From positions 1-64,000 of the IMG/VR virus record IMGVR_UViG_3300028558_000016: a stretch of DNA of 64,000 nucleotides; one strand, written 5' to 3'. Each line of letters starts with the position of its first letter. Within the stretch, counting starts at the first letter, position 1. The notes beneath the pieces are model-generated. The model searched no databases. It saw nothing but the letters and a program-made list of their open reading frames with translations, and was not told the origin of the DNA. A program made the translations under genes and the position numbers. Positions 497 through 31,179 of this stretch are shown one piece after another.

Positions 497-1039
497 TTAA
501 TAATTTTTTAGCTTATGAATATCTTCAGGTCCGTTTAGCACAACCCAATCTCTGTCCTTAAACACAAAATGAATTGTAAGCTTTATGTCAGGCCTCTTCG
601 TCCACAGCTCAGTGAAATTCTCAATGTGTTCGATCATGTCATCAAAGAATTCTATCTCCTTAACGTCAGGATAATGCTCATCGATTATTCTTATCGCTCG
701 GTCAACCTTCTTTTTCCCGTCATACTTCAATGAATGGTGATGGAAATAAAGCTTGTTCTTCTCGAGTATTGGCATGATGTTTGGCTTTAGCCTATACATC
801 CTGTTTGTCAACACAACCTTTGCTGCAGTGTAATCCTCAGTTGCACGCATGTAATGAGGAAGTATACACTCCAACGGTTTAATGTTGAATTCAGGCATGA
901 GGCTTTCCCATCTACCCCACCAACCATTATGAGGATATGGAACACCTTTAATCCTCTCGTATTCCTTCTTCCCTTCATCGGGAAGAGGAACATCGAGAAG
1001 AGTGCCGTCCATGTCAAATATGTAAAGTTTTGTTATCAT
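497..1039 (-). CDS. HAD-family phosphatase, Swiss Army Knife RNA-repair-like HAD
   Basis: N-terminal FDMDGT motif, GWWG segment, C-terminal FFDD motif; adjacent to an RNA ligase. Confidence 0.75.
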   Translation of the reverse strand: MITKLYIFDMDGTLLDVPLPDEGKKEYERIKGVPYPHNGWWGRWESLMPEFNIKPLECILPHYMRATEDYTAAKVVLTNRMYRLKPNIMPILEKNKLYFHHHSLKYDGKKKVDRAIRIIDEHYPDVKEIEFFDDMIEHIENFTELWTKRPDIKLTIHFVFKDRDWVVLNGPEDIHKLKNY

Positions 1040-1065
1040 TTATTTCTATTTACTAATTTACTAAA

Positions 1066-2487
1066 TTAAACAATTACATTATAGCCTTTGATCAAATCGT
1101 TGTACAATTCTTTACCATCGAAATCCATCATGTATCTCTTAGAGCTTTTTGGACCTCCGATGAAATCAAAGAAGAACCCTTGGTGCTTCTTCAACTTTCT
1201 TTCTACAACAAATCTCATTACTTTTGCTGCCAACTTCTTTCTCAAGTTGGTCGCAGTTTCATCGCCTCTGTCGGAAGCACATTCTCTTATAGAAGATATT
1301 TCATCACGAGTGAATCCCAGCTTCTCAAAATCAACTGTGTCGATCTCAGCGATGTCTTTCACGTGAGTCAATCCAAGCTTAGCAAGAACATCTGCTCTCA
1401 AACCTCTCGATTCAAAAGTGATTGCATCCTTGTGCTTTCTGTATTCAATGAACTCCTCGTAAGTGGAAATTTCAGAAGTCAACTTGTCAATTTCTTTTAA
1501 AGTTCTCTTCCATCCTTCTTGCAAGTGTTCAATCTCTTCTCCTCTTCCTGGGAAAGTCGCCTTGTATTCGTTCACGTTGTCCTCACCAGATCTAACGATG
1601 TCGATCAATCTCCAGAACGCAGTTGAGTCCTTGAAGAAGTGGATTGCACAGTAAGCTGGATTCTTCATTTTTACACGAGGGTATCCAAACTCAGTATGCT
1701 TTCCATAATCACAAACAACATAACCTTCCTCACGGTAAGTCATGCCATCGAAAGACTCTTTCAATTTATCTGGAGAAGAATTCAATGCAAGAGTTGGAGC
1801 CATTGGCACACCAAGATCTTTTGATATAATCTCAAGATCAACGAAAGAAACTTCTTCCAAAGTATCAAGCTTTCTTGCACCCAACAAATAGACAGCACTG
1901 TCTTGGTGTGGTGTAACAACAATGTTGTACTTAGTACAAAGCTCAAACGCCAAAGTATATCCATCATATTTCTTAAACAAAGCTTTTACCCACTCAGTTC
2001 TAAGATCACAATGTTCCATCATTCTCACATCGTCATCTTCTCTCTTAACAGTCTCCATGAAAGCGTGAACGAACAAATCCGAGAATGTTCCTCCAAGCTT
2101 AGTATAGTGAAAGTTATCCACATCACCTTCTCCGTTAGCAGTTCCAGTTGTTCCGAAGCAAACTTCTCCTGTAACGTAATCAGTGTAAACGTGAATCATT
2201 GTTCCATCCATCTTTTTGAAGATCCTTGCAGACTCCCAGTTTATAGGTGCTGCGTGTCCTTCTCCAAGGTTGAAGAATTTTCTGAATGCAATGGACATAA
2301 CTCTCCAAGTATCTTTCTCAACTACAAGTCCTCTCGCATCTCTAACTTCCTCGTTAGTGAAGTTGGATTCGATAGAATCGTACTTAAGCAATACCTTGTG
2401 AGGATAGTCCTTGTGCTTCAATTTGAAGTCAGCAAGAGTCTTCTCAAGACCGTGCTCTTTTAGGTATTTTGTTATTGCGAGTTCCAT
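1066..2487 (-). CDS. rnl1: T4 Rnl1-like RNA ligase with C-terminal extension
   Basis: EVRDARGLVVE, AFRKFFNLGE, motif I KMDGT, AFEL, EEGYVV, RVKMK. Confidence 0.85.
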   Translation of the reverse strand: MELAITKYLKEHGLEKTLADFKLKHKDYPHKVLLKYDSIESNFTNEEVRDARGLVVEKDTWRVMSIAFRKFFNLGEGHAAPINWESARIFKKMDGTMIHVYTDYVTGEVCFGTTGTANGEGDVDNFHYTKLGGTFSDLFVHAFMETVKREDDDVRMMEHCDLRTEWVKALFKKYDGYTLAFELCTKYNIVVTPHQDSAVYLLGARKLDTLEEVSFVDLEIISKDLGVPMAPTLALNSSPDKLKESFDGMTYREEGYVVCDYGKHTEFGYPRVKMKNPAYCAIHFFKDSTAFWRLIDIVRSGEDNVNEYKATFPGRGEEIEHLQEGWKRTLKEIDKLTSEISTYEEFIEYRKHKDAITFESRGLRADVLAKLGLTHVKDIAEIDTVDFEKLGFTRDEISSIRECASDRGDETATNLRKKLAAKVMRFVVERKLKKHQGFFFDFIGGPKSSKRYMMDFDGKELYNDLIKGYNVIV

Positions 2488-2498
2488 TTCAAATATGA

Positions 2499-3023
2499 TT
2501 AGTAATGTTTACTTTTTCTTTTCTTTTTTCTACAAACAAGGTCAGCAGCGCAAGAAGCCGCGTAGGCATCTGGCTTTGATCTTACCCTGTATCCGGCAGC
2601 TCTTATGAATCCCATTCCAGAATCGTAAGCAATGTTGCTTTTCCATCTTGGATTTGGATTCAAGTCAAGGTCGATGTCAACAAGCTTCTCCATTGGAGAA
2701 ATTCTTGCATAAACCCCTTCAAGCTCCTTTTCAAGGTATTCGCCAACAGCGAAAGCTCGTTCAACTTCGCCCCAAAGCTTTGAATACATGTCCTTAGCTC
2801 TTGGAACGTTGTCAATACTGAAAATGTAGTGGGCACCTGCACCAACGTGGTATACAAGAACAACCGTTGCATAACGTGTCTTGTTTTTTTGATGCTCGGA
2901 GTCACATCCAACATAGATGCGGATTCCGTTTGGTGATGTGGACATGTGAGTCTTGATGTATTCCCTCATGTAGATACCGAGGTCATCAATGAATGCACCG
3001 CCAAATTTTTTAAAGTTTTTCAT
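2499..3023 (-). CDS. RNase H-like YkuK/DUF458 family protein
   Basis: IYVGCDS, GAGAHYIF, KLWGEV, DIDLDLN and KPDAYAASCAAD motifs. Confidence 0.8.
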   Translation of the reverse strand: MKNFKKFGGAFIDDLGIYMREYIKTHMSTSPNGIRIYVGCDSEHQKNKTRYATVVLVYHVGAGAHYIFSIDNVPRAKDMYSKLWGEVERAFAVGEYLEKELEGVYARISPMEKLVDIDLDLNPNPRWKSNIAYDSGMGFIRAAGYRVRSKPDAYAASCAADLVCRKKKRKSKHY

Positions 3024-3139
3024 TTTCGTTTCTCCTTTCTCTGTGTGTTTGTTTTAACAGCATAAAAGAGAGAAACACACGTCTCAAAATTATACCGGTT
3101 TTTATCGGTTTGTTTCTGAGAACGCGTTTGGAAACTAAT

Positions 3140-3337
3140 CTAATTCATTTCGAACCATCTTCGTTTAAACATTATTCTCAGCCTCGCGTAAGTACGAAGT
3201 CGCGACCATTTAAAATAGACGCTTTTTGTAGTCCTATTTGACCCTCGCGGGGAAACATGACCACATCTTTTTATTAGAATGTGTTCTGCACATTTTAAAT
3301 CTTCAAACTCCTTCATATTACAATCTTTAAAGTCCAT
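3140..3337 (-). CDS. Hypothetical protein
   Basis: 65 aa ORF co-oriented with neighbours; no motif recognised. Confidence 0.45.
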   Translation of the reverse strand: MDFKDCNMKEFEDLKCAEHILIKRCGHVSPRGSNRTTKSVYFKWSRLRTYARLRIMFKRRWFEMN

Positions 3338-3355
3338 TTAATATTATATATCATT

Positions 3356-3646
3356 TTAAAATAATCCATTCTCGAGTATGTCAACGTGTTTCTTCAAAAC
3401 ATCTCCGTGACAACTTGACGGTTTGCACCAACATCCTAAAGTTTTTCCTTTTAATTCTCCCAATCGATCCATCAGGTCTTTATTGTTCAAAAGGTATTCC
3501 TCGTATTTTTCAATTGCTTCCTTTCTCGAGGAAACCTTAAACTCAGCAAGAGTTCCCTCTTTATGAGAATAAGGATTTCCCCAAATGGAAGGACGTCCAA
3601 TATAGACGTCGTACTTATCTTTCTTACAGTGGACAACTTTACACAT
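3356..3646 (-). CDS. DUF4326 domain protein
   Basis: VVHCKK..DVYIGRPSIWGNPY...LKGKTLGCWCKP..CHGDVL. Confidence 0.85.
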   Translation of the reverse strand: MCKVVHCKKDKYDVYIGRPSIWGNPYSHKEGTLAEFKVSSRKEAIEKYEEYLLNNKDLMDRLGELKGKTLGCWCKPSSCHGDVLKKHVDILENGLF

Positions 3647-3657
3647 TAATTAATTTC

Positions 3658-4347
3658 TTATGCGTGCAGCTGTCTAATGTTTCCCTTGTACAACTCCTTG
3701 ATGGTTATTTTTCTTCCTGTTACGTGATCAAGAACAAAACCATCCTGTTCTCTGTAAGTTCTTCTCTTGTCGTTTCTGTTTCCATAACCGATTTGATTGA
3801 ACCTCGTCTCTTTCACCTTGGCACCTATCGCACCATCATTAATGTCCTTGAGCCTTTCTTCAAGTCGTGCCCAAGCAGTCTCTTCATTTTTTTCTCTGGT
3901 CCTGTGCTCTTCAACTCTCACTATCATTCCAGTTGGAATATGAGTCAACACGCAAACAGTTTCTACCTTGTTTCGGTTTTGACCGCCGTTACCAGATCCA
4001 CGAGTGTACTTTCGATGCACGTCGTTTCTATTTAAGACAAATTTTGGTTGGGAGTTTTCTTCCATTACAGCTACCGTCACGGTGCTGGTCTGTACTCTTC
4101 CTCTCTTTTCAGTTGGAGGAACTCTTTGCCATCTATGTCCGCCTGATTCGTTCTCAAAGAACTTCCTGACTCCGTTTCCAGTCAGTCATAGCGAGACATA
4201 ACCTGGCATTCAGTGTTCTACTGCAGAAGCAAATTGATTGATGCTTGCGGCCTTTTGATAAATGTCCGCCATTTCATTGACGAGGAGCTTTGCATCTTCT
4301 CCTCCTTCTGCTGCTCGAATTTCGAGCTTGATCTTTTCTGTTTTCAT
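3658..4347 (-). CDS. Short class I peptide chain release factor (RF1/PrfH-like, 229 aa) with two in-frame TGA codons (4210-4212, 4186-4188)
   Basis: Manual translation from ATG 4347: [22 protein letters not shown]...[52 protein letters not shown]...TRGSGNGGQNRNKVET. The RF motifs EIRAxxGG, ESGGHRxQRVP (PxT) and GGQ lie in one frame; the track ORF 3658..4080 is only the 3' part. Confidence 0.85.
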
Positions 4348-5548: not shown

Positions 5549-5634
5549 TGCAGTAGGTGAGATTCGAACTCACAACCCCCTGATTGGAAGTCAGGTGCTC
5601 TATGCTTTCGCGTCCAATTAGGAGCTACTACTGC
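5549..5634 (-). tRNA. Atypical tRNA with TCC (Gly) anticodon, enlarged D-loop, Lys/Arg-like body
   Basis: GCAGTAG/CTACTGC acceptor with A73, 21-nt D-loop containing GC-GAAA-GC, anticodon arm CCTGA-CTTCCAA-TCAGG. Confidence 0.8.
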
Positions 5635-5660
5635 AAGTGCGAACTTTCCATCGCATTAAT

Positions 5661-5720
5661 TGGAGCAACCTCAGTTAACTGATTCGCATTTCTGCGAGGG
5701 GGGAGTTAACCTCTGGTTGC
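5661..5720 (-). ncRNA. CCA-ended hairpin RNA (element A)
   Basis: GCAACC..GTTAAC..TCGCA-GAAA-TGCGA..GTTAAC..GGTTGC-T-CCA. Confidence 0.6.
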
Positions 5721-5725
5721 GTAAT

Positions 5726-5773
5726 TGGAGCCGAGGGGCCGTTCTCCAACGGTGAGTTCCCTTTCAACTCGGC
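5726..5773 (-). ncRNA. CCA-ended hairpin RNA (element B)
   Basis: GCCGAG..GGG..CCGTT-GGAG-AACGG-CCC-CTCGGC-T-CCA. Confidence 0.6.
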
Positions 5774-5778
5774 ATGTG

Positions 5779-5869
5779 CGGGGAAGATTGGAATCGAACC
5801 AATTAGTTTGATTTGCAGAAGACATTCTTTTTAAACAGAATGGTGCTCAGCCACCCGAGCATCTTCCCC
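5779..5869 (-). tRNA. Aberrant tRNA (Cys GCA-like remnant) with inserted hairpin; possible pseudo-tRNA
   Basis: GGGGAAG/CTTCCCC acceptor, GCTC/GAGC D-stem, ATTGG-TTCGATT-CCAAT T-arm. The central region has a CATTCT/AGAATG hairpin followed by CT-GCA-AA-TCAAA-CTA. Confidence 0.6.
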
Positions 5870-5874
5870 TTTTA

Positions 5875-6057
5875 TTATTTTCTCTTTCTCTCTTCGTCTA
5901 AATATCTATCATGTTCGTCTTTTGAATAGATCTCATAGTAACCACATTTTACTTTGTAATAAAATGGTGACATGTATTTCCATTCCTTGTTAACATCAAT
6001 GAATTTAGATTTTTCTAAAATCTGATTTTCCTCATCCGTCGGTTTGATTGTAATCAT
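5875..6057 (-). CDS. Hypothetical protein
   Basis: Track ORF 5875..6120; the in-frame ATG at 6057 (MITIKPT...) is the likelier start. Confidence 0.5.
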   Translation of the reverse strand: MITIKPTDEENQILEKSKFIDVNKEWKYMSPFYYKVKCGYYEIYSKDEHDRYLDEERKRK

Positions 6058-6195
6058 CGTTTTGTTTTTAGTTATTAAATAGGATGGGAAAACTTTAAGC
6101 GATAGTCTTTCGACAGGCAAGTTATTTTTTCATCGATGATTGATCAAGTCACCTCAAAATAAAATACTTTTCTACACTTCAGCACTTTCCCTCTG

Positions 6196-6268
6196 AGCGG
6201 AAAACGGGGCTCGAACCCGCGACCTTAACCTTGGCAAGGTTACGCTCTACCAACTGAGCTATTTCCGC
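6196..6268 (-). tRNA. tRNA-Gly(GCC)
   Basis: GCGGAAA acceptor, U73, TAACC-TTGCCAA-GGTTA; canonical cloverleaf. Confidence 0.95.
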
Positions 6269-6269
6269 A

Positions 6270-6400
6270 TGGTGCAGTGTAATTAAAAGGGTTGGACTTA
6301 TCTTCCATTCGTCAATGGCTCTTACCAACTTTCGATGTCACGATTAATTTTAAGCGCAAAACGATTCTATTGTCGAATTTTCTATTTGCGCCGACACTGC
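6270..6400 (-). ncRNA. 131-nt multi-stem RNA with 7-bp acceptor-like stem and ACCA end (element C)
   Basis: GCAGTGT/ACACTGC-A-CCA closing; internal stems GCGCAAA/TTTGCGC, AATTAA/TTAATT, GTTGG/CCAAC, CCATT-GACG-AATGG. Confidence 0.6.
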
Positions 6401-6407
6401 ATTTTTG

Positions 6408-6480
6408 AGCGGGAGACGAGGTTCGAACTCGCGACCTATAGCTTGGAAGGCTATCGCTCTACCAACTGAGCTACTCCCGC
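6408..6480 (-). tRNA. tRNA-Gly(TCC)
   Basis: GCGGGAG acceptor, U73, ATAGC-CTTCCAA-GCTAT; canonical. Confidence 0.95.
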
Positions 6481-6518
6481 GTGCGGACATTGTTTCGGGT
6501 ACAACGTCCAAAACCTAA

Positions 6519-6592
6519 TGGGGCCAGGATCGAACTCGCGTCCGACGAATGGAAGCTAATGAGGCCATCCAAACCGCTCATTATCGCCTGGC
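6519..6592 (-). ncRNA. 74-nt CCA-ended tRNA-like RNA lacking canonical arms (element E)
   Basis: GCCAGG/CCTGGC-C-CCA closing, TAATGAG/CTCATTA hairpin, GAGTTCGATC T-loop-like motif without a T-stem. Confidence 0.55.
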
Positions 6593-6645
6593 ATTTGTTG
6601 ATGATACACAACATTATATACCGACTGTATAAAAATGTTTTAATG

Positions 6646-6718
6646 TGACCCCGGTGGGGATCGAACCCACAACCACCTGATTAAGAGTCAGGAGCTCCAC
6701 CAATTGAGCTACAGAGTC
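6646..6718 (-). tRNA. tRNA-Lys(CTT)
   Basis: GACTCTG/CGGGGTC acceptor, CCTGA-CTCTTAA-TCAGG. Confidence 0.95.
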
Positions 6719-6748
6719 ATTTTGTTGATGCAATACGTCAAAGATCGT

Positions 6749-6973
6749 TCATTTCATGAAAAGATGTTTAATTCTTTCCATATCTACTTCAATAGTTTTA
6801 ATGTTCAACTTCTCTCCAGTCTTTTTAAAATGATCATACCAAAGTCTAACCTTTTCAGATTTTATTATCTGACCATTATAATTTTTCCTTTTCAACCATT
6901 CCTTTCCAAAATATAAAATTCGTTTTTCTGTTATTCTCGAATTCATTATATGTTTAAAAACTTTTTCAATCAT
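6749..6973 (-). CDS. Hypothetical protein within the tRNA array
   Basis: 74 aa ORF fitting exactly between two tRNAs. Confidence 0.55.
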   Translation of the reverse strand: MIEKVFKHIMNSRITEKRILYFGKEWLKRKNYNGQIIKSEKVRLWYDHFKKTGEKLNIKTIEVDMERIKHLFMK

Positions 6974-6974
6974 G

Positions 6975-7059
6975 TAGCGCTGGTGAGACTCGAACTCACA
7001 CTACCGTTAAGGAACCCGCTTATGAGGCGGGCACAATTACCACATCTGTTCACAGCGCT
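6975..7059 (-). tRNA. tRNA with CAT anticodon on a class II (long variable arm) scaffold
   Basis: AGCGCTG/CAGCGCT, A73, CCCGC-CTCATAA-GCGGG, 15-nt variable region, GTGAG-TTCGAGT-CTCAC. Confidence 0.85.
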
Positions 7060-7101
7060 ATCTCGTCTGCTTCTTTGTAGGCCCCGTACTATATCTACAA
7101 A

Positions 7102-7371
7102 TCATTTGGTGGGGCTGTCGGAAACAGCAGACTTTACTTTATTTTCTTTCTTATACGTCTTCAAGAATTCCAAAGCATTTTGCAATTCTTCGACCCTGTT
7201 CTTGTTAGAAGGAATGCTTCCATTTGCCTGTCTAACAGTCATCGGATCCGATGACGATAAATTCTTTTCAAAGAACTCTAAATTTCTTTCTTCCATTAAG
7301 AGTCTTTCTCTTAATAATTTTGCCACGTATGGCATCGGATCATATTGTCCTCTTTCTTCTTGTGTCTTCAT
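7102..7371 (-). CDS. Hypothetical protein within the tRNA array
   Basis: 89 aa ORF starting 2 nt after the CCA of the upstream tRNA. Confidence 0.6.
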   Translation of the reverse strand: MKTQEERGQYDPMPYVAKLLRERLLMEERNLEFFEKNLSSSDPMTVRQANGSIPSNKNRVEELQNALEFLKTYKKENKVKSAVSDSPTK

Positions 7372-7372
7372 T

Positions 7373-7464
7373 TGGTGCGCCCGGAGGGATTCGAACCCCC
7401 GTTGGTGTTATTCACACGTCTGATTAAAAGTCAGGACCATTCGGCCAGCTATGGGAACGGACGC
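7373..7464 (-). tRNA. tRNA with TTT (Lys) anticodon and long variable arm
   Basis: GCGTCCG/CGGGCGC-A-CCA, CTGA-CTTTTAA-TCAG, V-arm GTGT-GAATA-ACAC, GGGGG-TTCGAAT-CCCTC. Confidence 0.85.
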
Positions 7465-7478
7465 ATTTGTTTTTATTG

Positions 7479-7552
7479 TGCGCCCGGTTGGGTTCGAACC
7501 AACGACCCCCTGATTAAAAGTCAGGTGCATCTACCAGCTGAGCTACGAGCGC
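7479..7552 (-). tRNA. tRNA-Lys(TTT)
   Basis: GCGCTCG/CGGGCGC, CCTGA-CTTTTAA-TCAGG; canonical. Confidence 0.95.
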
Positions 7553-7774
7553 AAATATTTGGATATGGAAATCCTCTTGCATCTCGTATTTCAGCGAGAT
7601 GCCTTTACCGTTTATATTTCATTTTAGTTTTCATTATCATTATATTTTTTAAAAGAACAGAATACGTTTTTTACCTTTTCATTAAAATTGAAATGCTCGT
7701 TAGAGCTTGTTTGTTTTGCTGTACGTATTCTTTTTTCTTTTTAATTTCTACCACCATTCAGGATGCTTTTGTTT

Positions 7775-7880
7775 TGGCAAAGATTGGATTCGAACCAATG
7801 ACCTCTCGTTTACTTTCCTTAACAATGTTTCCATTGACGGGGATTTCAGGCGAGCGCTCTACCAACTGAGCTACTTATCC
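7775..7880 (-). tRNA. tRNA-Phe(GAA) with a 33-nt insertion after position 37 (intron-like)
   Basis: Standard D- and T-arms. Anticodon arm CTCG-C-CT-GAA-A-[33 nt including CAATG-GAAA-CATTG]-A-A-CGAG; the acceptor stem has two mismatches. Confidence 0.7.
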
Positions 7881-7908
7881 TTTTGTAATGCTGCATGCAT
7901 CCTTTTTG

Positions 7909-7981
7909 AGCCGAGAACCGGGGTCGAACCGGTGACCTTCCGCTTACAAGGCGGGTGCTCTACCAACTGAGCTATCTCGGC
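7909..7981 (-). tRNA. tRNA-Thr(TGT)
   Basis: GCCGAGA/TCTCGGC, CCCGC-CTTGTAA-GCGGA. Confidence 0.95.
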
Positions 7982-7984
7982 AAT

Positions 7985-8119
7985 TTACAAATATTCGTTC
8001 TTGTTACACTCAAAAAACAAAACCCACAACTCGTGAATTCTCTCATTCACTTCATCATTTCCATTTTGTCTCTTGTTTAACAAAGACATCAATTCGTTTA
8101 CTATGTCATCCTTTTTCAT
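7985..8119 (-). CDS. 44-aa hypothetical protein between Thr tRNAs
   Basis: Manual translation MKKDDIVNELMSLLNKRQNGNDEVNERIHELWVLFFECNKNEYL*. Confidence 0.45.
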   Translation of the reverse strand: MKKDDIVNELMSLLNKRQNGNDEVNERIHELWVLFFECNKNEYL

Positions 8120-8122
8120 TTG

Positions 8123-8195
8123 AGCCTACAACCGGGATCGAACCGGTCACCTCATCCTTACCAAGGATGTGTTCTACCAACTGAACTATGTGGGC
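8123..8195 (-). tRNA. tRNA-Thr(GGT)
   Basis: GCCCACA/TGTAGGC, CATCC-TTGGTAA-GGATG. Confidence 0.95.
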
Positions 8196-8317
8196 AATGT
8201 CTCCGATCGTAAAAATAATCTCTCAAATATTATCAAGATCATTTCCATTCTTTATTAAGCGGTCGGACACGCTACTACTAAATCCAAAAGTTGCAACTTC
8301 TGAATTTTTCATCTTTG

Positions 8318-8413
8318 AAGCGGGAGTGAGATTCGAACTCACGTTCTCTTTCGAGTTGAGGCTTATGAGGCCCTGCTGGCGTTTTGCAACTTCCATCTCC
8401 AGTCGATCCCGCA
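8318..8413 (-). tRNA. Initiator-like tRNA(CAT) with expanded D-loop and a V-arm
   Basis: T1:T72 mismatch plus GCGGGA/TCCCGC, D-stem CTGG/CCAG with long loop, GGGC-CTCATAA-GCCT, V-arm CTC-GAAA-GAG. Confidence 0.75.
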
Positions 8414-8419
8414 ATGTGT

Positions 8420-8541
8420 GCCGCTTCCTGGACCCTATCACCAGGATTTTCTTTGGACTACAGAAGAGAGATTCGCCAATTTTTTTCCATAGAATTAAAC
8501 CATATACGGCGCTTTTCTACACTCTCAACTTTCGCAAGCGG
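8420..8541 (-). ncRNA. Candidate structured RNA (element F)
   Basis: Closing CCGCT/AGCGG; internal GAGAG/CTCTC, CGCCG/TGGCG and TCCTGG/CCAGGA stems. Confidence 0.4.
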
Positions 8542-8552
8542 ACTTTTATTTG

Positions 8553-8624
8553 TAGCGGGAGATGGATTCGAACCACCGACCTCAGGGTTATGAGCCCTGC
8601 GAGCTACCCCTGCTCTATCCCGCA
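8553..8624 (-). tRNA. tRNA-fMet(CAT)
   Basis: 1:72 mismatch, three consecutive G-C pairs in the anticodon stem (CAGGG-CTCATAA-CCCTG), A73. Confidence 0.95.
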
Positions 8625-13290: not shown

Positions 13291-14475
13291 TTATATTGCA
13301 ATAGGCGCTTTAATCGCCGGGTGACTTTTGTATCCAACAAATTCAAAGTTCTCATACTTATATTCAATGATATGACCATTGTCACCATGCAAAGAGCTAT
13401 AAACTGTAGGTGGTTTTTTAAGTCTAAGCTTACATAATTCCATTGGCTCTCTATTTAATTGTTCATCGACTTGATCGAAATGATTTACGTATATGTGACA
13501 GTCTCCTCCGTTAAATACAAGCTCCTCAGGAACCATATTAACAGACTGAGCAATCATTTCCAATAACAATCCATAAGAAGCAATATTAAATGGCAATCCC
13601 AAAAACAAATCAACTGAACGTTGTTGCCACATTAGTGATATAGCACGTTTAGGAACATTCTGTTGGTCCAATTCAAAATCTTTCCAATCACTTTTATCTC
13701 CAGCCCAATTTTTAATGAACCACTCATTTCTTTCTTCTGTACTCATCTCACGCGTCCAACATTGGAATCCATAATGACATGGAGGAAGAAGCATCTTGTC
13801 TATCTCGGCAACGTTCCATGCATTCACCATCAATCGTCTTGAGTCTGGATTAGTCTTTAAGTCCTGTATCAAACGAAGTATTTGATCATACCACAGAGAA
13901 CCAAAGTCTTCTTTACCGGTATCTTCGTCCTCGTAATGCAACCATCCCTGCCACTGTCTCCATTGTTTTCCATAAACTGGTCCAAGCTCTCCCCATACAT
14001 CAGAAAATGAATCACGTGAAGCTGCAAACAATCCACTCAATTCGGATTCTTTTATTTTTTCAACAAACTCTTCTAATGTTAACGGAGGATGTTTTTCCAA
14101 TTGTTCTCTAATATATTTCACTGACATTGCATCTTCGGTTGTATCGGCTCTTCTAATAGAAGCCTCTAAGTCTTCTTTTAATTTTTCATGATGCTTCATG
14201 TAATTCTGCCAAGGCCATTCATTCCAAATGTTAACTCCATTGTCGACGAGATATTTTATGTTGTGTCCTCCTTGAAGGAACCACAGCAATTCATGGATGA
14301 CGCTTTTAGTGTGAATCTTCTTTGTCGTTAACAATGGAAATCCATCTTGCATGTTGAACTTTAAAGTTCGACCAAAAACAGAAACTGTTCCAGTTCCGGT
14401 TCTGTCAGATTTTCTAACTCCTTTTTCTCTAACTTCTTTTAAAAGATCGAGATATGCTTTATCTGTGTTGTTCAT
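13291..14475 (-). CDS. thyA: Thymidylate synthase with insertions
   Basis: DRTGTGT, FPLLTTKK, LGPVYGKQWR, NPDSRRL, LPPCH, QRSVDLFLGLPFNIASY. Confidence 0.97.
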   Translation of the reverse strand: MNNTDKAYLDLLKEVREKGVRKSDRTGTGTVSVFGRTLKFNMQDGFPLLTTKKIHTKSVIHELLWFLQGGHNIKYLVDNGVNIWNEWPWQNYMKHHEKLKEDLEASIRRADTTEDAMSVKYIREQLEKHPPLTLEEFVEKIKESELSGLFAASRDSFSDVWGELGPVYGKQWRQWQGWLHYEDEDTGKEDFGSLWYDQILRLIQDLKTNPDSRRLMVNAWNVAEIDKMLLPPCHYGFQCWTREMSTEERNEWFIKNWAGDKSDWKDFELDQQNVPKRAISLMWQQRSVDLFLGLPFNIASYGLLLEMIAQSVNMVPEELVFNGGDCHIYVNHFDQVDEQLNREPMELCKLRLKKPPTVYSSLHGDNGHIIEYKYENFEFVGYKSHPAIKAPIAI

Positions 14476-30078: not shown

Positions 30079-31179
30079 TTACATTTGTTGATAAATTTGT
30101 TGTTCAGTCTTGTGATATAATTTGGAAACAAAGTCATACAGCTTAGTTTTGGTATCGTCTTCGTATGGAAGAGTCTCCACATATTCTTTTGCGAATTTCA
30201 ATAAATCGAAATTTGTATCTTGAAATTCCTCGCTCGTTGGCATCTCATCTTGATCACCAAGCAATGGATGGAAATCTATTCTTCTATAACTGCCATCAAG
30301 AAGATCCATGAAAATATTTATTGGAGCTTTCAATGCTTGTTCTCCATCAATATAAATATCCACAAAATTATTCTTGAACACCTGATTCAATCTGCTTGGA
30401 GACATCTCAATTACATCCGTGAATTTCATCTTAATGAATTTAGGAGAATAATTATTTTCCCAATACGTTTCATTCTCAGTTGTCAAGTCAAGCATCGTCA
30501 CTCCTTTTTGATTTCCGAGATCACTTCTTGTTAATTGATATGGAGAACCAAGCATGTTAACATTCTTAATCTTCTGAGCATAGTGAATGTGTCCTGAGTA
30601 TACAGTCTTAAACACATCGAAGTTATCGATGTTACAACCTTCAGTTATGTCAGTGAACTTATTAAATTTCAATCCTTGTATGTCAGCGTGACACAGCAAA
30701 TAATCGTGACCTTTGCCTGTATTTTCGACGCATTCATTTTCGGCAGCATGGTCTTTTCTCCATGGCATTGCCAAGAATTTCTTCTGACCTATTTGCAAAG
30801 TTTCTGGTTCCTCATATATGAATATGTTTGGAATCCATTTCAATGATTTTAAAGAATTAATCTCATTGCTTGTCTTAGCCCAGATGTCGTGATTTCCAAG
30901 AATTATTATTATTCCATCTTTAAATATCTCTGAAAGCTTTTCAAAAATATTAACTCCCATACAAAGCACTTTTAAATTGATTGCATTCCTGCTATCAAAA
31001 ATATCACCAAGAACAAGAAGAACATCTCCCTGTTGGTAATTCTTTTTTACAAGTGGAATGAAAAACCTATCGAAATAGTTTTCTTGGATGTCCTGCCATT
31101 CTTGTGAATTGGAGCGAACTCCAAAATGCAAGTCAGTAAGCATCCAACATCTTTTTGCATGCGAGAAATCTTTTTTCAT
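30079..31179 (-). CDS. Recombination endonuclease nuclease subunit (gp47 / SbcD-Mre11)
   Basis: TDLHFG, LGDIFD, LGNHD, LCHAD, SGHIH metallophosphoesterase motifs. Confidence 0.93.
   Translation of the reverse strand: MKKDFSHAKRCWMLTDLHFGVRSNSQEWQDIQENYFDRFFIPLVKKNYQQGDVLLVLGDIFDSRNAINLKVLCMGVNIFEKLSEIFKDGIIIILGNHDIWAKTSNEINSLKSLKWIPNIFIYEEPETLQIGQKKFLAMPWRKDHAAENECVENTGKGHDYLLCHADIQGLKFNKFTDITEGCNIDNFDVFKTVYSGHIHYAQKIKNVNMLGSPYQLTRSDLGNQKGVTMLDLTTENETYWENNYSPKFIKMKFTDVIEMSPSRLNQVFKNNFVDIYIDGEQALKAPINIFMDLLDGSYRRIDFHPLLGDQDEMPTSEEFQDTNFDLLKFAKEYVETLPYEDDTKTKLYDFVSKLYHKTEQQIYQQM

Follow-up and report, generated by a model that had tools for sequence, protein, structure and literature searches.

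Phages are known to escape bacterial defence nucleases that cut tRNAs by carrying tRNAs of their own. The T5 tRNA-Lys, tRNA-Thr and tRNA-Asn act against AriB of PARIS, a phage tRNA-Thr acts against P2-OLD, and the T5 tRNA-Tyr acts against the retron PtuAB. The prime targets of AriB are Lys UUU and Thr UGU, with Asn GUU secondary; the enzyme cuts at 40|41 and reads D-loop U16-U17 (bioRxiv 10.1101/2025.02.04.636281). P2-OLD targets Thr UGU (PMC12445682). Long variable arms outside the usual bacterial class II families (Leu, Ser and Tyr) are also known. The nematode nev-tRNAs are class II-shaped tRNAs with Gly, Ile or Lys anticodons that are charged with Leu (PMC3333845). The bacterial allo-tRNAs and irregular tRNA polycistrons have an 8/4 or 9/3 acceptor/T branch and Ser identity, and some are found in phages and soil metagenomes (Mukai et al., PMC5389517). 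The tRNA gene cluster of T4 encodes stable small RNAs (species 1 and 2, rnaC/rnaD) whose function is unknown.

We analysed a 64,000-nucleotide window of a 482-kb soil phage (IMG/VR record IMGVR_UViG_3300028558_000016, positions 1 to 64,000), in which a tRNA array lies on the minus strand at 8624-5297. The original prediction, made for 5549-8624, was that Gly(UCC), Lys(UUU) and CAU each occur as one textbook tRNA plus one or two versions with added loops or arms, several of them capped by GAAA tetraloops, also in a "Phe insert" and in element A. Performing ARAGORN and Rfam searches and parsing the cloverleafs by position, we find that this observation is real and was even understated. The array also holds canonical Thr (three copies), Lys CUU and Gly GCC tRNAs. 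The features are as follows.

8552-8624, minus strand: canonical initiator-type tRNA(CAU) with a U1xU72 mismatch, GGG/CCC in the anticodon stem and A73 (Rfam 62.9 bits).
8318-8413, minus strand: V1, a CAU variant with the same acceptor stem as the initiator, a D-loop enlarged to 19 nt and a 15-nt variable region with a 3-bp stem and a GAAA loop; the discriminator is U73 here and C73 in relatives.
7775-7880, minus strand: V2, a tRNA-like RNA with acceptor, D and T arms and about 35 extra nt in the anticodon arm, which is extended into a long arm ending in a 5-bp GAAA-capped hairpin; it probably does not decode.
7478-7552, minus strand: canonical tRNA-Lys(UUU), carrying U36AAUCA41.
7373-7464, minus strand: V3, tRNA-Lys(UUU) with a class-II-like D-arm, an 18-nt variable region (4-bp stem), A73 and an encoded CCA; its acceptor and anticodon stems are close to those of the canonical Lys.
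6974-7059, minus strand: V4, tRNA(CAU), either elongator Met or Ile2, with a 15-nt, weakly paired variable region and A73.
6519-6592, minus strand: V5, a highly conserved tRNA-like RNA in which a 6-bp acceptor stem stacks on a 7-bp GCGA-capped hairpin, so that there is no T-loop; the anticodon-like loop is CUCAUUA, CCA is encoded and a TATAAT-like motif lies upstream.
6407-6480, minus strand: canonical tRNA-Gly(UCC), U73.
5778-5869, minus strand: V6, an odd tRNA-like RNA with an 8-10-nt anticodon loop, an unpaired long variable region and G73, which ARAGORN calls Asn (fold z = -4.6).
5636-5772, minus strand: element A, a structured non-tRNA RNA with three hairpins, one of them 5 bp and GAAA-capped (fold z = -3.1).
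5549-5634, minus strand: V8, tRNA(UCC) with a GAAA mini-hairpin inside a 21-nt D-loop, A3:U70, a Lys-like anticodon stem and A73 instead of the U73 of the canonical Gly tRNA.
497-4080, minus strand: neighbouring RNA-repair and ribosome-rescue genes, identified by Pfam and NCBIfam searches, namely an RF-1/GGQ-domain protein (3658-4080), an RNase H-like protein (2499-3023), a T4 Rnl1-type RNA ligase (1066-2487) and a HAD protein of the 'Swiss Army Knife RNA repair' type (497-1039).

Against the 29-bit gathering threshold of the Rfam tRNA model (RF00005), V4 scored 46.5, V2 scored 51.3 and V8 scored 31.8 bits as a partial match. V3 scored 28.0 bits in the window but 49.9 in the related phage contig L001. 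ARAGORN called both V3 and V4. V1 was missed by both default ARAGORN and Rfam in the window, while its L001 orthologue scored 32.6 bits. V5, V6 and element A were not matched as tRNA, and element A had no Rfam match. A 7-bp acceptor stem, a 5-bp T stem with a TTCGA-type loop and a 5-bp anticodon stem with a 7-nt loop carrying U33 are present in V1, V3, V4, V8 and the long forms found elsewhere in the genome. They are not all present in V2 (extended arm), V5 (no T-loop) or V6 (8-10-nt loop). The class II architecture, a variable region longer than 10 nt that forms a stem-loop, is seen in V1, V3 and, with weak pairing, V4.

The GAAA part of the observation is only modestly above background in the window. 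The 3.09-kb array contains seven hairpins of 3 bp or more capped by GAAA, compared to 1.3 in shuffles and 1-6 (median 2) in other blocks of the window. Only three of the seven lie in the variant RNAs (V1, V2 and element A), and the V8 cap closes just 2 bp.

V2 had been read as a Phe tRNA with an insert, and we asked whether the insert could be an intron. No intron family matched at E values up to 1, and the 35-nt insertion folds as a continuation of the anticodon stem. V2 is 92% identical in L001, while the same slot in the related contig L004 holds a tRNA-like RNA with a short CCA-GAAA-TGG arm and no anticodon. V2 is not a Phe isoacceptor with an insert.

Next, we checked whether the variants are sporadic and lack compensatory changes, the outcome that had been set beforehand as fatal to the original reading. 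V1, V3, V4, V5 and V8 recur in the related contigs behind L001, L004/L005, L015 and L016, lineages whose neighbouring protein is only 63-67% identical. Their stems show 3-5 both-side compensatory changes per comparison, with no lost pairs and no anticodon-loop change, the same pattern as in their canonical neighbours. V1 has orthologues in L001, L004 and L015; its variable-arm stem CTC/GAG changes to CCA/TGG with GAAA kept, and its other stems show four both-side changes. V3 has orthologues in L001, L004, L015 and L016; its variable-arm stem reads GTGT/ACAC, GAGA/TCTC or GGTG/CACC with GAAA, and five both-side changes are seen against L001. V4 is 92-100% identical in L001, L004 and L016, with one both-side change. 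V8 is 88-92% identical in L001 and L004, with three to four both-side stem changes. V5, the most conserved element of the array, was matched in L001, L004, L013 and L016 (L013 was left out of the alignment) and shows a C-G to U-A compensatory change in its hairpin, but it had no match among GenBank phages. V6 is absent from L001 and L004, although a roughly 89% relative was seen in one soil run, and element A shares only short stretches with L001. The RNA-repair and rescue genes follow the array in L004 and in the ENA contigs as well. In summary, selection rather than decay is well supported for V1, V3, V4, V5 and V8.

The phage carries a near-complete tRNA set (58 ARAGORN calls and 62 Rfam hits), in which Glu UUC, Gln UUG, Asn, His, Trp and Cys also have expanded forms. 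The long-arm anticodons are UUU and CAU in the array and UUC, UUG, GUU, GUG and CCA elsewhere in the genome, outside the Leu, Ser and Tyr families. The pairing of canonical and altered forms is systematic in this genome but not universal. Trp exists only in the long form, and in other phages only 31 of 91 long Lys(UUU) had a canonical partner inside the stretch retrieved. The identity marks follow the anticodon, both here and in other phages (His G-1:C73, Cys U73, Trp G73, Asn G73, Lys A73, Thr G1:C72/C2:G71), so cognate charging is likely. However, V8, the Asn variant and V1 differ from their canonical partners in the discriminator base, which makes cognate charging uncertain for them.

Performing pattern scans of IMG/VR, we find that the long-arm form is common in phages. 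At least 87 of 118 hits were well-formed long-arm tRNA-Lys(UUU) and at least 59 of 121 were tRNA-Thr(UGU), compared to about 14 of 119 for Asp and about 8 of 119, for Lys, in cellular genomes. These frequencies are indicative only, since the scans were capped in the number of hits, the patterns required one T-loop sequence and fixed anticodon-loop words, and two of the scans targeted Lys and Thr. An alignment of 77 sequences shows both-side changes at 17 of 19 cloverleaf pairs. A hairpin of 3 bp or more forms in 95-97% of the variable regions, against 56-68% of shuffles, and the loops are mostly GNRA. Among 2,499 distinct phage tRNAs, from contigs chosen for having a long Lys, Thr or Asp tRNA, long forms are frequent for Thr UGU and Asn GUU and absent for Ala (0/82) and Arg ACG (0/51). 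The enrichment in Lys(UUU), Thr(UGU) and Asn(GUU) matches the published targets of AriB and P2-OLD, although long forms also exist for Trp, Cys, Met, Glu and Asp, which are not known Toprim targets. Long Lys forms keep the host-like U36AAUC40 in 56 of 85 cases and short phage forms in 22 of 79, the short forms often carrying T5-like site changes. This would fit two alternative escape routes, but the difference could also reflect host phylogeny.

We therefore assume, tentatively, that V1, V3, V4 and V8, like their genome-wide counterparts, are functional tRNAs kept by selection that most likely decode the same codons as their canonical partners. They carry the anticodon loop of an ordinary tRNA and mostly its synthetase identity marks, while the body is rebuilt by a long, usually GNRA-capped variable arm with a class-II-like D-arm or by a hairpin in the D-loop. 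In this view, they probably serve as back-ups on which shape-reading tRNA nucleases, such as the Toprim enzymes AriB and P2-OLD, cannot dock. These enzymes cut the anticodon stem, and AriB also reads the D-loop. A helix emerging at positions 44-48, next to the 40/41 cut site, together with a changed D-loop, would block docking without changing the anticodon stem-loop. The RNA ligase and rescue genes beside the array fit this context. Our analysis directly establishes the structures, their conservation and covariation, their wide occurrence in phages and the retention of identity marks, whereas expression, processing, aminoacylation, use in translation and resistance to nucleases are inferred; no RNA-seq run was found to hold this phage. 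A long variable arm faces class II synthetases such as LysRS and might hinder charging. The phage encodes a CCA-adding enzyme. The original interpretation, that recurrence reflects selection rather than random decay and serves to evade or titrate tRNA-targeting nucleases, is thus partly supported: selection is well supported, evasion is the best-supported explanation but rests on circumstantial evidence, and titration fits poorly for V1, V3, V4 and V8, which keep the features of decoding tRNAs. For V2 and V5, which lack a usable anticodon arm or T-loop and are a different thing, namely stable tRNA-like RNAs, titration remains possible.

Two other readings appear unlikely. The altered RNAs might be decoys that are not used in translation but soak up tRNA-binding defence proteins, such as nucleases or tRNA-modifying toxins, and so protect working tRNAs. 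The lack of a usable anticodon loop in V2, the lack of any anticodon in its L004 counterpart and the strong conservation of V5 without a T-loop would suit this, as would the AriB-type site shared by V3 and the canonical Lys. However, V1, V3, V4 and V8 keep 7/5 acceptor/T helices, an unchanged 7-nt anticodon loop and mostly anticodon-matched discriminators, which a pure decoy need not keep, and the long Trp form must decode if the phage supplies Trp decoding. Equally, the arm might be a private handle for a phage-encoded partner, such as a synthetase, a modification enzyme or a non-ribosomal aminoacyl-tRNA user like a DNA-hypermodifying transferase, creating a tRNA pool set apart from that of the host. 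The phage encodes a non-discriminating AspRS, a truncated ProRS and a HisRS-like fragment directly after the long and short His tRNAs, besides the CCA-adding enzyme; thymidylate-synthase-like and methyltransferase genes lie nearby, and tRNA-dependent DNA hypermodification by phages is known (PMC13219725). But no LysRS or ThrRS was found in the genome, yet Lys is the commonest long form; the long forms occur in very different phages with no shared partner gene identified, and their identity marks are those of standard bacterial synthetases.

The remaining readings are weaker still. Under self-immunity, the phage or a helper element would destroy ordinary-shaped host tRNAs to shut off the host or rival phages, with its own long forms exempt. 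PARIS-type systems are often carried by mobile elements (PMC11464382) and the tRNA set is near-complete, but a search of the genome limited to the DUF4435 (AriB-type) nuclease family gave no match, and the canonical-shaped copies that the phage keeps would be cut. Recoding by mischarging, in which, as with nematode nev-tRNAs or bacterial allo-tRNAs, the class-II shape makes LeuRS or SerRS charge these tRNAs so that Lys, Met or Gly codons are read as Leu or Ser, is very unlikely. The class-II-like D-arms and the A73 of many long forms, which is also the Leu discriminator, and of V8 with its Gly anticodon are compatible with it. On the other hand, the discriminators track the anticodon rather than being uniformly A73 or G73, the acceptor/T branch is 7/5, and proteome-wide missense would also hit phage proteins. 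Least likely is that the variants are decaying duplicates that picked up insertions. V6 and element A are not shared with L001 or L004, and V2 has two mismatches in its acceptor stem, but the conservation and compensation described above already contradict decay for V1, V3, V4, V5 and V8, and hundreds of well-formed relatives exist in other phages.

Compared with the known systems, V2, V5 and element A resemble the stable RNAs of T4 in being non-tRNA or tRNA-like RNAs encoded among phage tRNA genes; V5 has an acceptor stem with an encoded CCA and a GNRA hairpin in place of the T arm. In the cultured Xanthomonas jumbo phage XacN1 (AP018399.1), an 87-nt Lys tRNA (30565-30651) with an AGC-GAAA-GCT variable arm and a D-arm almost identical to that of V3 sits 40 nt from a 77-nt canonical Lys tRNA (30692-30768). 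The long form there has anticodon CUU and the short one UUU, and the published description calls both canonical without remark on structure (PMC5852040). The allo-tRNAs share long variable arms and non-standard anticodon/scaffold combinations, but the variants here parse as 7/5 with cognate identity marks. The nev-tRNAs likewise place a long variable arm on a tRNA whose anticodon belongs to a class I family, but they occur in nematode nuclear genomes, whereas here the carriers are phages and the discriminators match the anticodon's own synthetase. The phage tRNAs that escape defence tRNases are phage-encoded, sit in tRNA arrays, have the same anticodon as the targeted host tRNA and involve the same amino-acid families (Lys UUU, Thr UGU and Asn GUU). 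V3 lacks the T5-type substitutions at positions 39-41, as V3 and the canonical Lys both read U36AAUCA41. Those known cases escape through point changes in the anticodon stem-loop or D-loop of an ordinary 76-nt tRNA, while here, where resistance is only inferred, the stem-loop is often host-like and it is the architecture that is changed, by a long variable arm or a D-loop hairpin.

The array lies on the minus strand at 8624-5297, with genes about 200 nt apart and small ORFs between them. The window is the first 64 kb of a 482,156-bp IMG/VR virus record from a rhizosphere metagenome, and the whole genome gives 62 Rfam tRNA matches and 58 ARAGORN calls. In RNA sense, the elements follow each other in the order below.

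Elements of the array, all on the minus strand
8624-8552, initiator-type tRNA(CAU)
8413-8318, V1, a CAU variant
8195-8122, tRNA-Thr GGU
7981-7908, tRNA-Thr UGU
7880-7775, V2, a tRNA-like RNA
7552-7478, tRNA-Lys UUU
7464-7373, V3, a Lys(UUU) variant
7059-6974, V4, a CAU variant
6718-6645, tRNA-Lys CUU
6592-6519, V5, a tRNA-like RNA without a T-loop
6480-6407, tRNA-Gly UCC
6268-6195, tRNA-Gly GCC
5869-5778, V6, a structured tRNA-like RNA
5772-5636, element A, a structured RNA
5634-5549, V8, a variant with anticodon UCC
5370-5297, tRNA-Thr CGU

V1 shares the acceptor stem of the initiator, but it has a 19-nt D-loop and a 15-nt variable region with a 3-bp stem and a GAAA loop. Both ARAGORN and Rfam missed V1 in the window. 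V3 is a Lys(UUU) tRNA with a class-II-like D-arm and an 18-nt variable region holding a 4-bp stem. V4 is a CAU tRNA with a 15-nt variable region, and V8 has anticodon UCC and a GAAA mini-hairpin in a 21-nt D-loop. The original prediction, that Gly(UCC), Lys(UUU) and CAU each occur as one textbook tRNA plus versions with added loops or arms, is therefore confirmed. However, the GAAA-capped hairpins that it mentioned are only modestly enriched. We counted 7 in the array, against 1.3 in shuffles and 1-6 in other blocks of the window, and three of the seven lie in the variant RNAs. ARAGORN in intron mode also gave a reverse-strand "Glu with a 1,172-nt intron" across the array and a "Gly(UCC) with a 1,271-nt intron" at 412350-413714 of the genome, and we took both as artefacts of that mode.

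To distinguish selection from decay, we looked for relatives of the array. Searching GenBank phages with the whole array, and with V4 and V5 alone, returned only generic tRNA hits or nothing. IMG/VR and the JGI metagenomes held only one related contig besides the source. The 195-aa neighbouring protein was a poor anchor, since its relatives at 62% identity or less have no tRNA array beside it. Syntenic arrays were nevertheless recovered from that one IMG/VR contig (L001), two Logan contigs (L004 and L005), and three short contigs (L013, L015, and L016). V1, V3, V4, and V8 are present in L001 and L004, with matches also in L015 and L016. V5 is matched in L001, L004, and L016, and also in L013, whose array is reduced and shows no clear V1, V3, or V4. 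Contigs about 90% identical that cover V1, V3, V4, V5, and V8 also occur in soil, groundwater, and watershed runs from four other studies, although they yielded no usable sequences. A search of sequencing runs for expression found DNA runs only. In L004, an ORF with HNH-endonuclease-like motifs (638-1100) sits inside the array between Thr UGU and the V2-like RNA, and this ORF is absent from the window.

Comparing the relatives with the window copy, we counted changes at the 17 acceptor, anticodon, and T-stem pairs.

Both-side compensatory changes in the variants
V1, 4
V3, 5 (against L001)
V8, 3-4
V4, 0-1

No pair was lost and no anticodon-loop position changed. The canonical Lys, Gly, and initiator genes of the same arrays show the same pattern. 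The added helices covary as well. The V1 arm reads CTC/GAAA/GAG in the window and CCA/GAAA/TGG in relatives, while the V3 arm reads GTGT/ACAC, GAGA/TCTC, or GGTG/GAAA/CACC. Sporadic occurrence without compensatory changes had been named beforehand as the outcome that would speak against selection, and this is not what we observed.

Not all the variants are isoacceptors. V2 had been read as a tRNA-Phe with an insert, and we checked whether it is an intron-containing tRNA. No intron family matched. Its roughly 35 extra nucleotides fold as a continuation of the anticodon stem into a long arm capped by a 5-bp GAAA hairpin, and the GAA "anticodon" sits in an internal loop. In L004, the same slot holds a tRNA-like RNA whose arm is only CCA-GAAA-TGG, with no anticodon. 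Thus, V2 is probably a non-decoding tRNA-like RNA. V5 is the most conserved element. Its 6-bp acceptor stem stacks on a 7-bp hairpin closed by GCGA, so there is no T-loop; its loop reads CUCAUUA, and CCA is encoded. The hairpin shows a C-G to U-A compensatory change. Within 6519-6660 (minus strand), V5 is preceded by conserved GTCGGTATATAAT and TTGTGTATCATC motifs separated by an insert of variable length. This could be a promoter or a hairpin, and V5 may be transcribed on its own. V6 and element A are structured (z = -4.6 and -3.1, respectively) but are not shared with L001 or L004. Element A (5636-5772, minus strand) contains the word GCTCCAATTA twice, each time just after a hairpin.

The pattern covers the whole genome. 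Long or expanded forms exist for several further tRNAs, usually beside a canonical copy.

Expanded tRNAs elsewhere in the genome
Glu UUC, 87 nt
Gln UUG, 85 nt
Asn GUU, 88 nt
His GUG, 90 nt, with a GAAA-capped arm
Trp CCA, 84 nt, the only Trp gene
Cys GCA, with a GAAA hairpin in the D-loop

Identity marks are mostly kept: G-1:C73 for His, U73 for Cys, G73 for Trp, U1:A72 for Gln, and A73 for Lys. The exceptions are V8 (A73 and A3:U70 against U73 and G3:C70), the Asn variant (U73), and V1 (U73 or C73). A 147-nt gene at 417828-417974 (+) of the genome is called by ARAGORN as tRNA-Ile(GAU) with a 73-nt intron. Its insert contains a well-paired CAU anticodon stem-loop, so the call is doubtful and the RNA may be another expanded CAU species. 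Three tRNAs, at 358020-358092 (-), 368276-368349 (+), and 374278-374351 (+) of the genome, have the amber-reading anticodon CUA. An alternative genetic code was considered and rejected. Reading TAG as sense adds few open frames genome-wide (130,302 to 140,868 residues), far less than reading TGA or TAA as sense would. The standard code therefore seems to be in use, and we kept table 11 throughout. The cultured jumbo phage XacN1 also carries two CUA tRNAs with no known targets.

The pattern also reaches far beyond this phage. We scanned IMG/VR for a Lys(UUU) anticodon loop followed 21-36 nt later by a common T-loop word, where canonical tRNAs have 14-15 nt, and performed equivalent scans for Thr(UGU), for Asp(GUC), and in cellular genomes. 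The counts of hits are lower bounds.

Pattern hits and well-formed long-arm tRNAs among them
Lys(UUU), IMG/VR: at least 118 hits, 87 well formed
Lys(UUU), 596 Gb of cellular genomes: at least 119 hits, about 8 well formed
Thr(UGU), IMG/VR: at least 121 hits, 59 distinct well formed
Asp(GUC), IMG/VR: at least 119 hits, about 14 well formed, one family

The 87 Lys hits have a 7-bp acceptor stem, a 5-bp T stem, a 5-bp anticodon stem, and a 13-21-nt variable region, and many lie on contigs of 200-600 kb. Of the roughly 8 hits in cellular genomes, three sit in dense, phage-like tRNA arrays. Solitary long-variable-arm tRNA(UUU) genes outside any tRNA array occur in a Thalassovita isolate and in Terracidiphilus, Actinomycetota, Frankiales, and Mycobacteriales MAG contigs (cellular genome contigs L184, L203, L211, L228, and L229). 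They could be prophage remnants or host back-up tRNAs. An alignment of 77 long Lys tRNAs shows both-side changes at 17 of 19 cloverleaf pairs. RNAalifold on this MAFFT alignment did not call the variable-arm helix, because arms of 13-21 nt are out of register. We therefore tested each sequence against shuffles and found that a hairpin of 3 bp or more forms in 95-97% of the variable regions, against 56-68% of shuffles. The loops are mostly GAAA, GCAA, or GUAA. Long tRNA-Ile(UAU) genes from unrelated phage contigs (IMG/VR loci L043, L066, L082, and L125) share a conserved variable-arm loop, CCAGATTAG, suggesting a specific recognition element rather than a mere stable cap.

In the first 118 loci, 31 of 91 long Lys(UUU) had a canonical Lys(UUU) within the 15 kb or less that was retrieved. 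The long Thr, Asn, Trp, Lys CUU, initiator, His, and Cys tRNAs found in these loci all carry the discriminator expected for their anticodon. XacN1 has an 87-nt Lys tRNA with an AGC-GAAA-GCT arm and a D-arm almost identical to that of V3, lying 40 nt from a 77-nt Lys tRNA. The XacN1 paper calls its tRNAs canonical.

To see which tRNAs get the arm, we pooled 2,499 distinct tRNAs from the retrieved phage loci.

Long forms (81 nt or more) among the pooled phage tRNAs
Ala UGC, 0/82
Arg ACG, 0/51
Phe, 1/81
Arg UCU, 1/58
Gln UUG, 3/81
Pro UGG, 5/94
Asn, 29/126
Cys, 14/56
CAU, 21/143
Trp, 11/74
Glu UUC, 13/94

In the loci chosen only for a long Lys tRNA, the next most affected were Thr UGU (10/32), Ile UAU (4/15), and Asn GUU (10/49). 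The published nuclease targets match this list. PARIS AriB has Lys UUU and Thr UGU as prime targets, with Asn GUU secondary, and cuts between positions 40 and 41. In the predicted model of its authors, the second monomer faces D-loop U16-U17, and a U16C change impaired cleavage. P2-OLD severs the anticodon stem of Thr UGU. A long arm leaves the tRNA body at positions 44-48, directly after the 3' strand of the anticodon stem, and the long forms also have different D-loops. V3 and the canonical Lys both keep the AriB-type site U36AAUCA41. Across phages, long Lys forms keep U36AAUC40 in 56 of 85 cases, against 22 of 79 short forms, and short forms often carry T5-like substitutions. Thr shows the same trend (38/71 against 15/46). 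This would be expected if a changed shape and a changed site are alternative escapes, but all of it is correlation from a biased sample of loci without control for phylogeny.

Directly downstream of the array on the same strand (497-4080, minus strand) lie four genes, encoding a 140-aa RF-1/GGQ-domain protein with weak PrfH- and ArfB-like matches, an RNase H-like PF04308 protein, a 473-aa T4 Rnl1-type RNA ligase, and a HAD protein of the RNA-repair "Swiss Army Knife" type. This order is kept in relatives, where a 2'-5' RNA ligase-like gene also appears. Further along the window (13291-14475, minus strand), the thymidylate-synthase-family gene is unusually long (394 aa). Its homologue in L013 (3942-5552) carries weak intein and LAGLIDADG hits and is followed by a separate fragment. 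Elsewhere in the genome, the phage encodes a non-discriminating AspRS (126571-127836), a truncated ProRS of 376 aa (393722-394852), a HisRS-like fragment of 233 aa (414484-415185), and a CCA-adding enzyme (307328-308485). The AspRS gene lies just past the Asp/Glu/Cys/Ala tRNA array, and the HisRS-like fragment directly follows the two His tRNAs. No LysRS or ThrRS was found in the genome. A phage-borne AriB was also considered and rejected, as there is no DUF4435 (AriB-type) match.

In summary, the variants and the selection acting on them are shown by the analysis, whereas their charging, their decoding, and their escape from tRNA-targeting nucleases through a changed tRNA shape are inferred. 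The proposal that the variants diversified under selection to evade or titrate such nucleases is partly supported, and nuclease escape by shape is the best-supported hypothesis for their function. A wider reading is possible, though we hold it only tentatively: long-variable-arm (class II-shaped) copies of class I tRNAs, above all Lys(UUU), Thr(UGU), and Asn(GUU), may be a widespread and so far unremarked phage counter-defence. In this view, they would keep a host-like anticodon stem-loop, be charged by the cognate synthetase, and decode normally, while the added helix and altered D-loop would keep Toprim-type and other shape-reading tRNases from docking. This would be a second, architectural escape route beside the known point-mutation route. 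V5-type RNAs, with an acceptor stem and CCA on a GNRA hairpin, could be a further, non-decoding member of the same toolkit.

Why phages carry tRNAs is an old question. The current answer, that they replace tRNAs destroyed by defence nucleases, rests on a few point-mutant examples from T5. Many large phages seem to rebuild the shape of exactly those tRNAs. If so, the pressure from tRNA nucleases is broad, and it selects on architecture as well as sequence. Bacterial synthetases, EF-Tu, and ribosomes would then have to accept a long variable arm on Lys, Thr, Asn, Met, Trp, and other tRNAs, which bears on tRNA identity rules and on the design of nuclease-proof or orthogonal tRNAs. Annotation pipelines miss some of these genes, as with V1, or label them without comment. 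We found no description of long-variable-arm class I tRNAs in phages among the open-access papers and bioRxiv preprints searched, a set that excludes most subscription journals. The closest known systems each differ in one respect or another. The escape tRNAs of T5 are point mutants and differ by mechanism. Nematode nev-tRNAs differ by identity and host, and allo-tRNAs differ in the acceptor/T branch.
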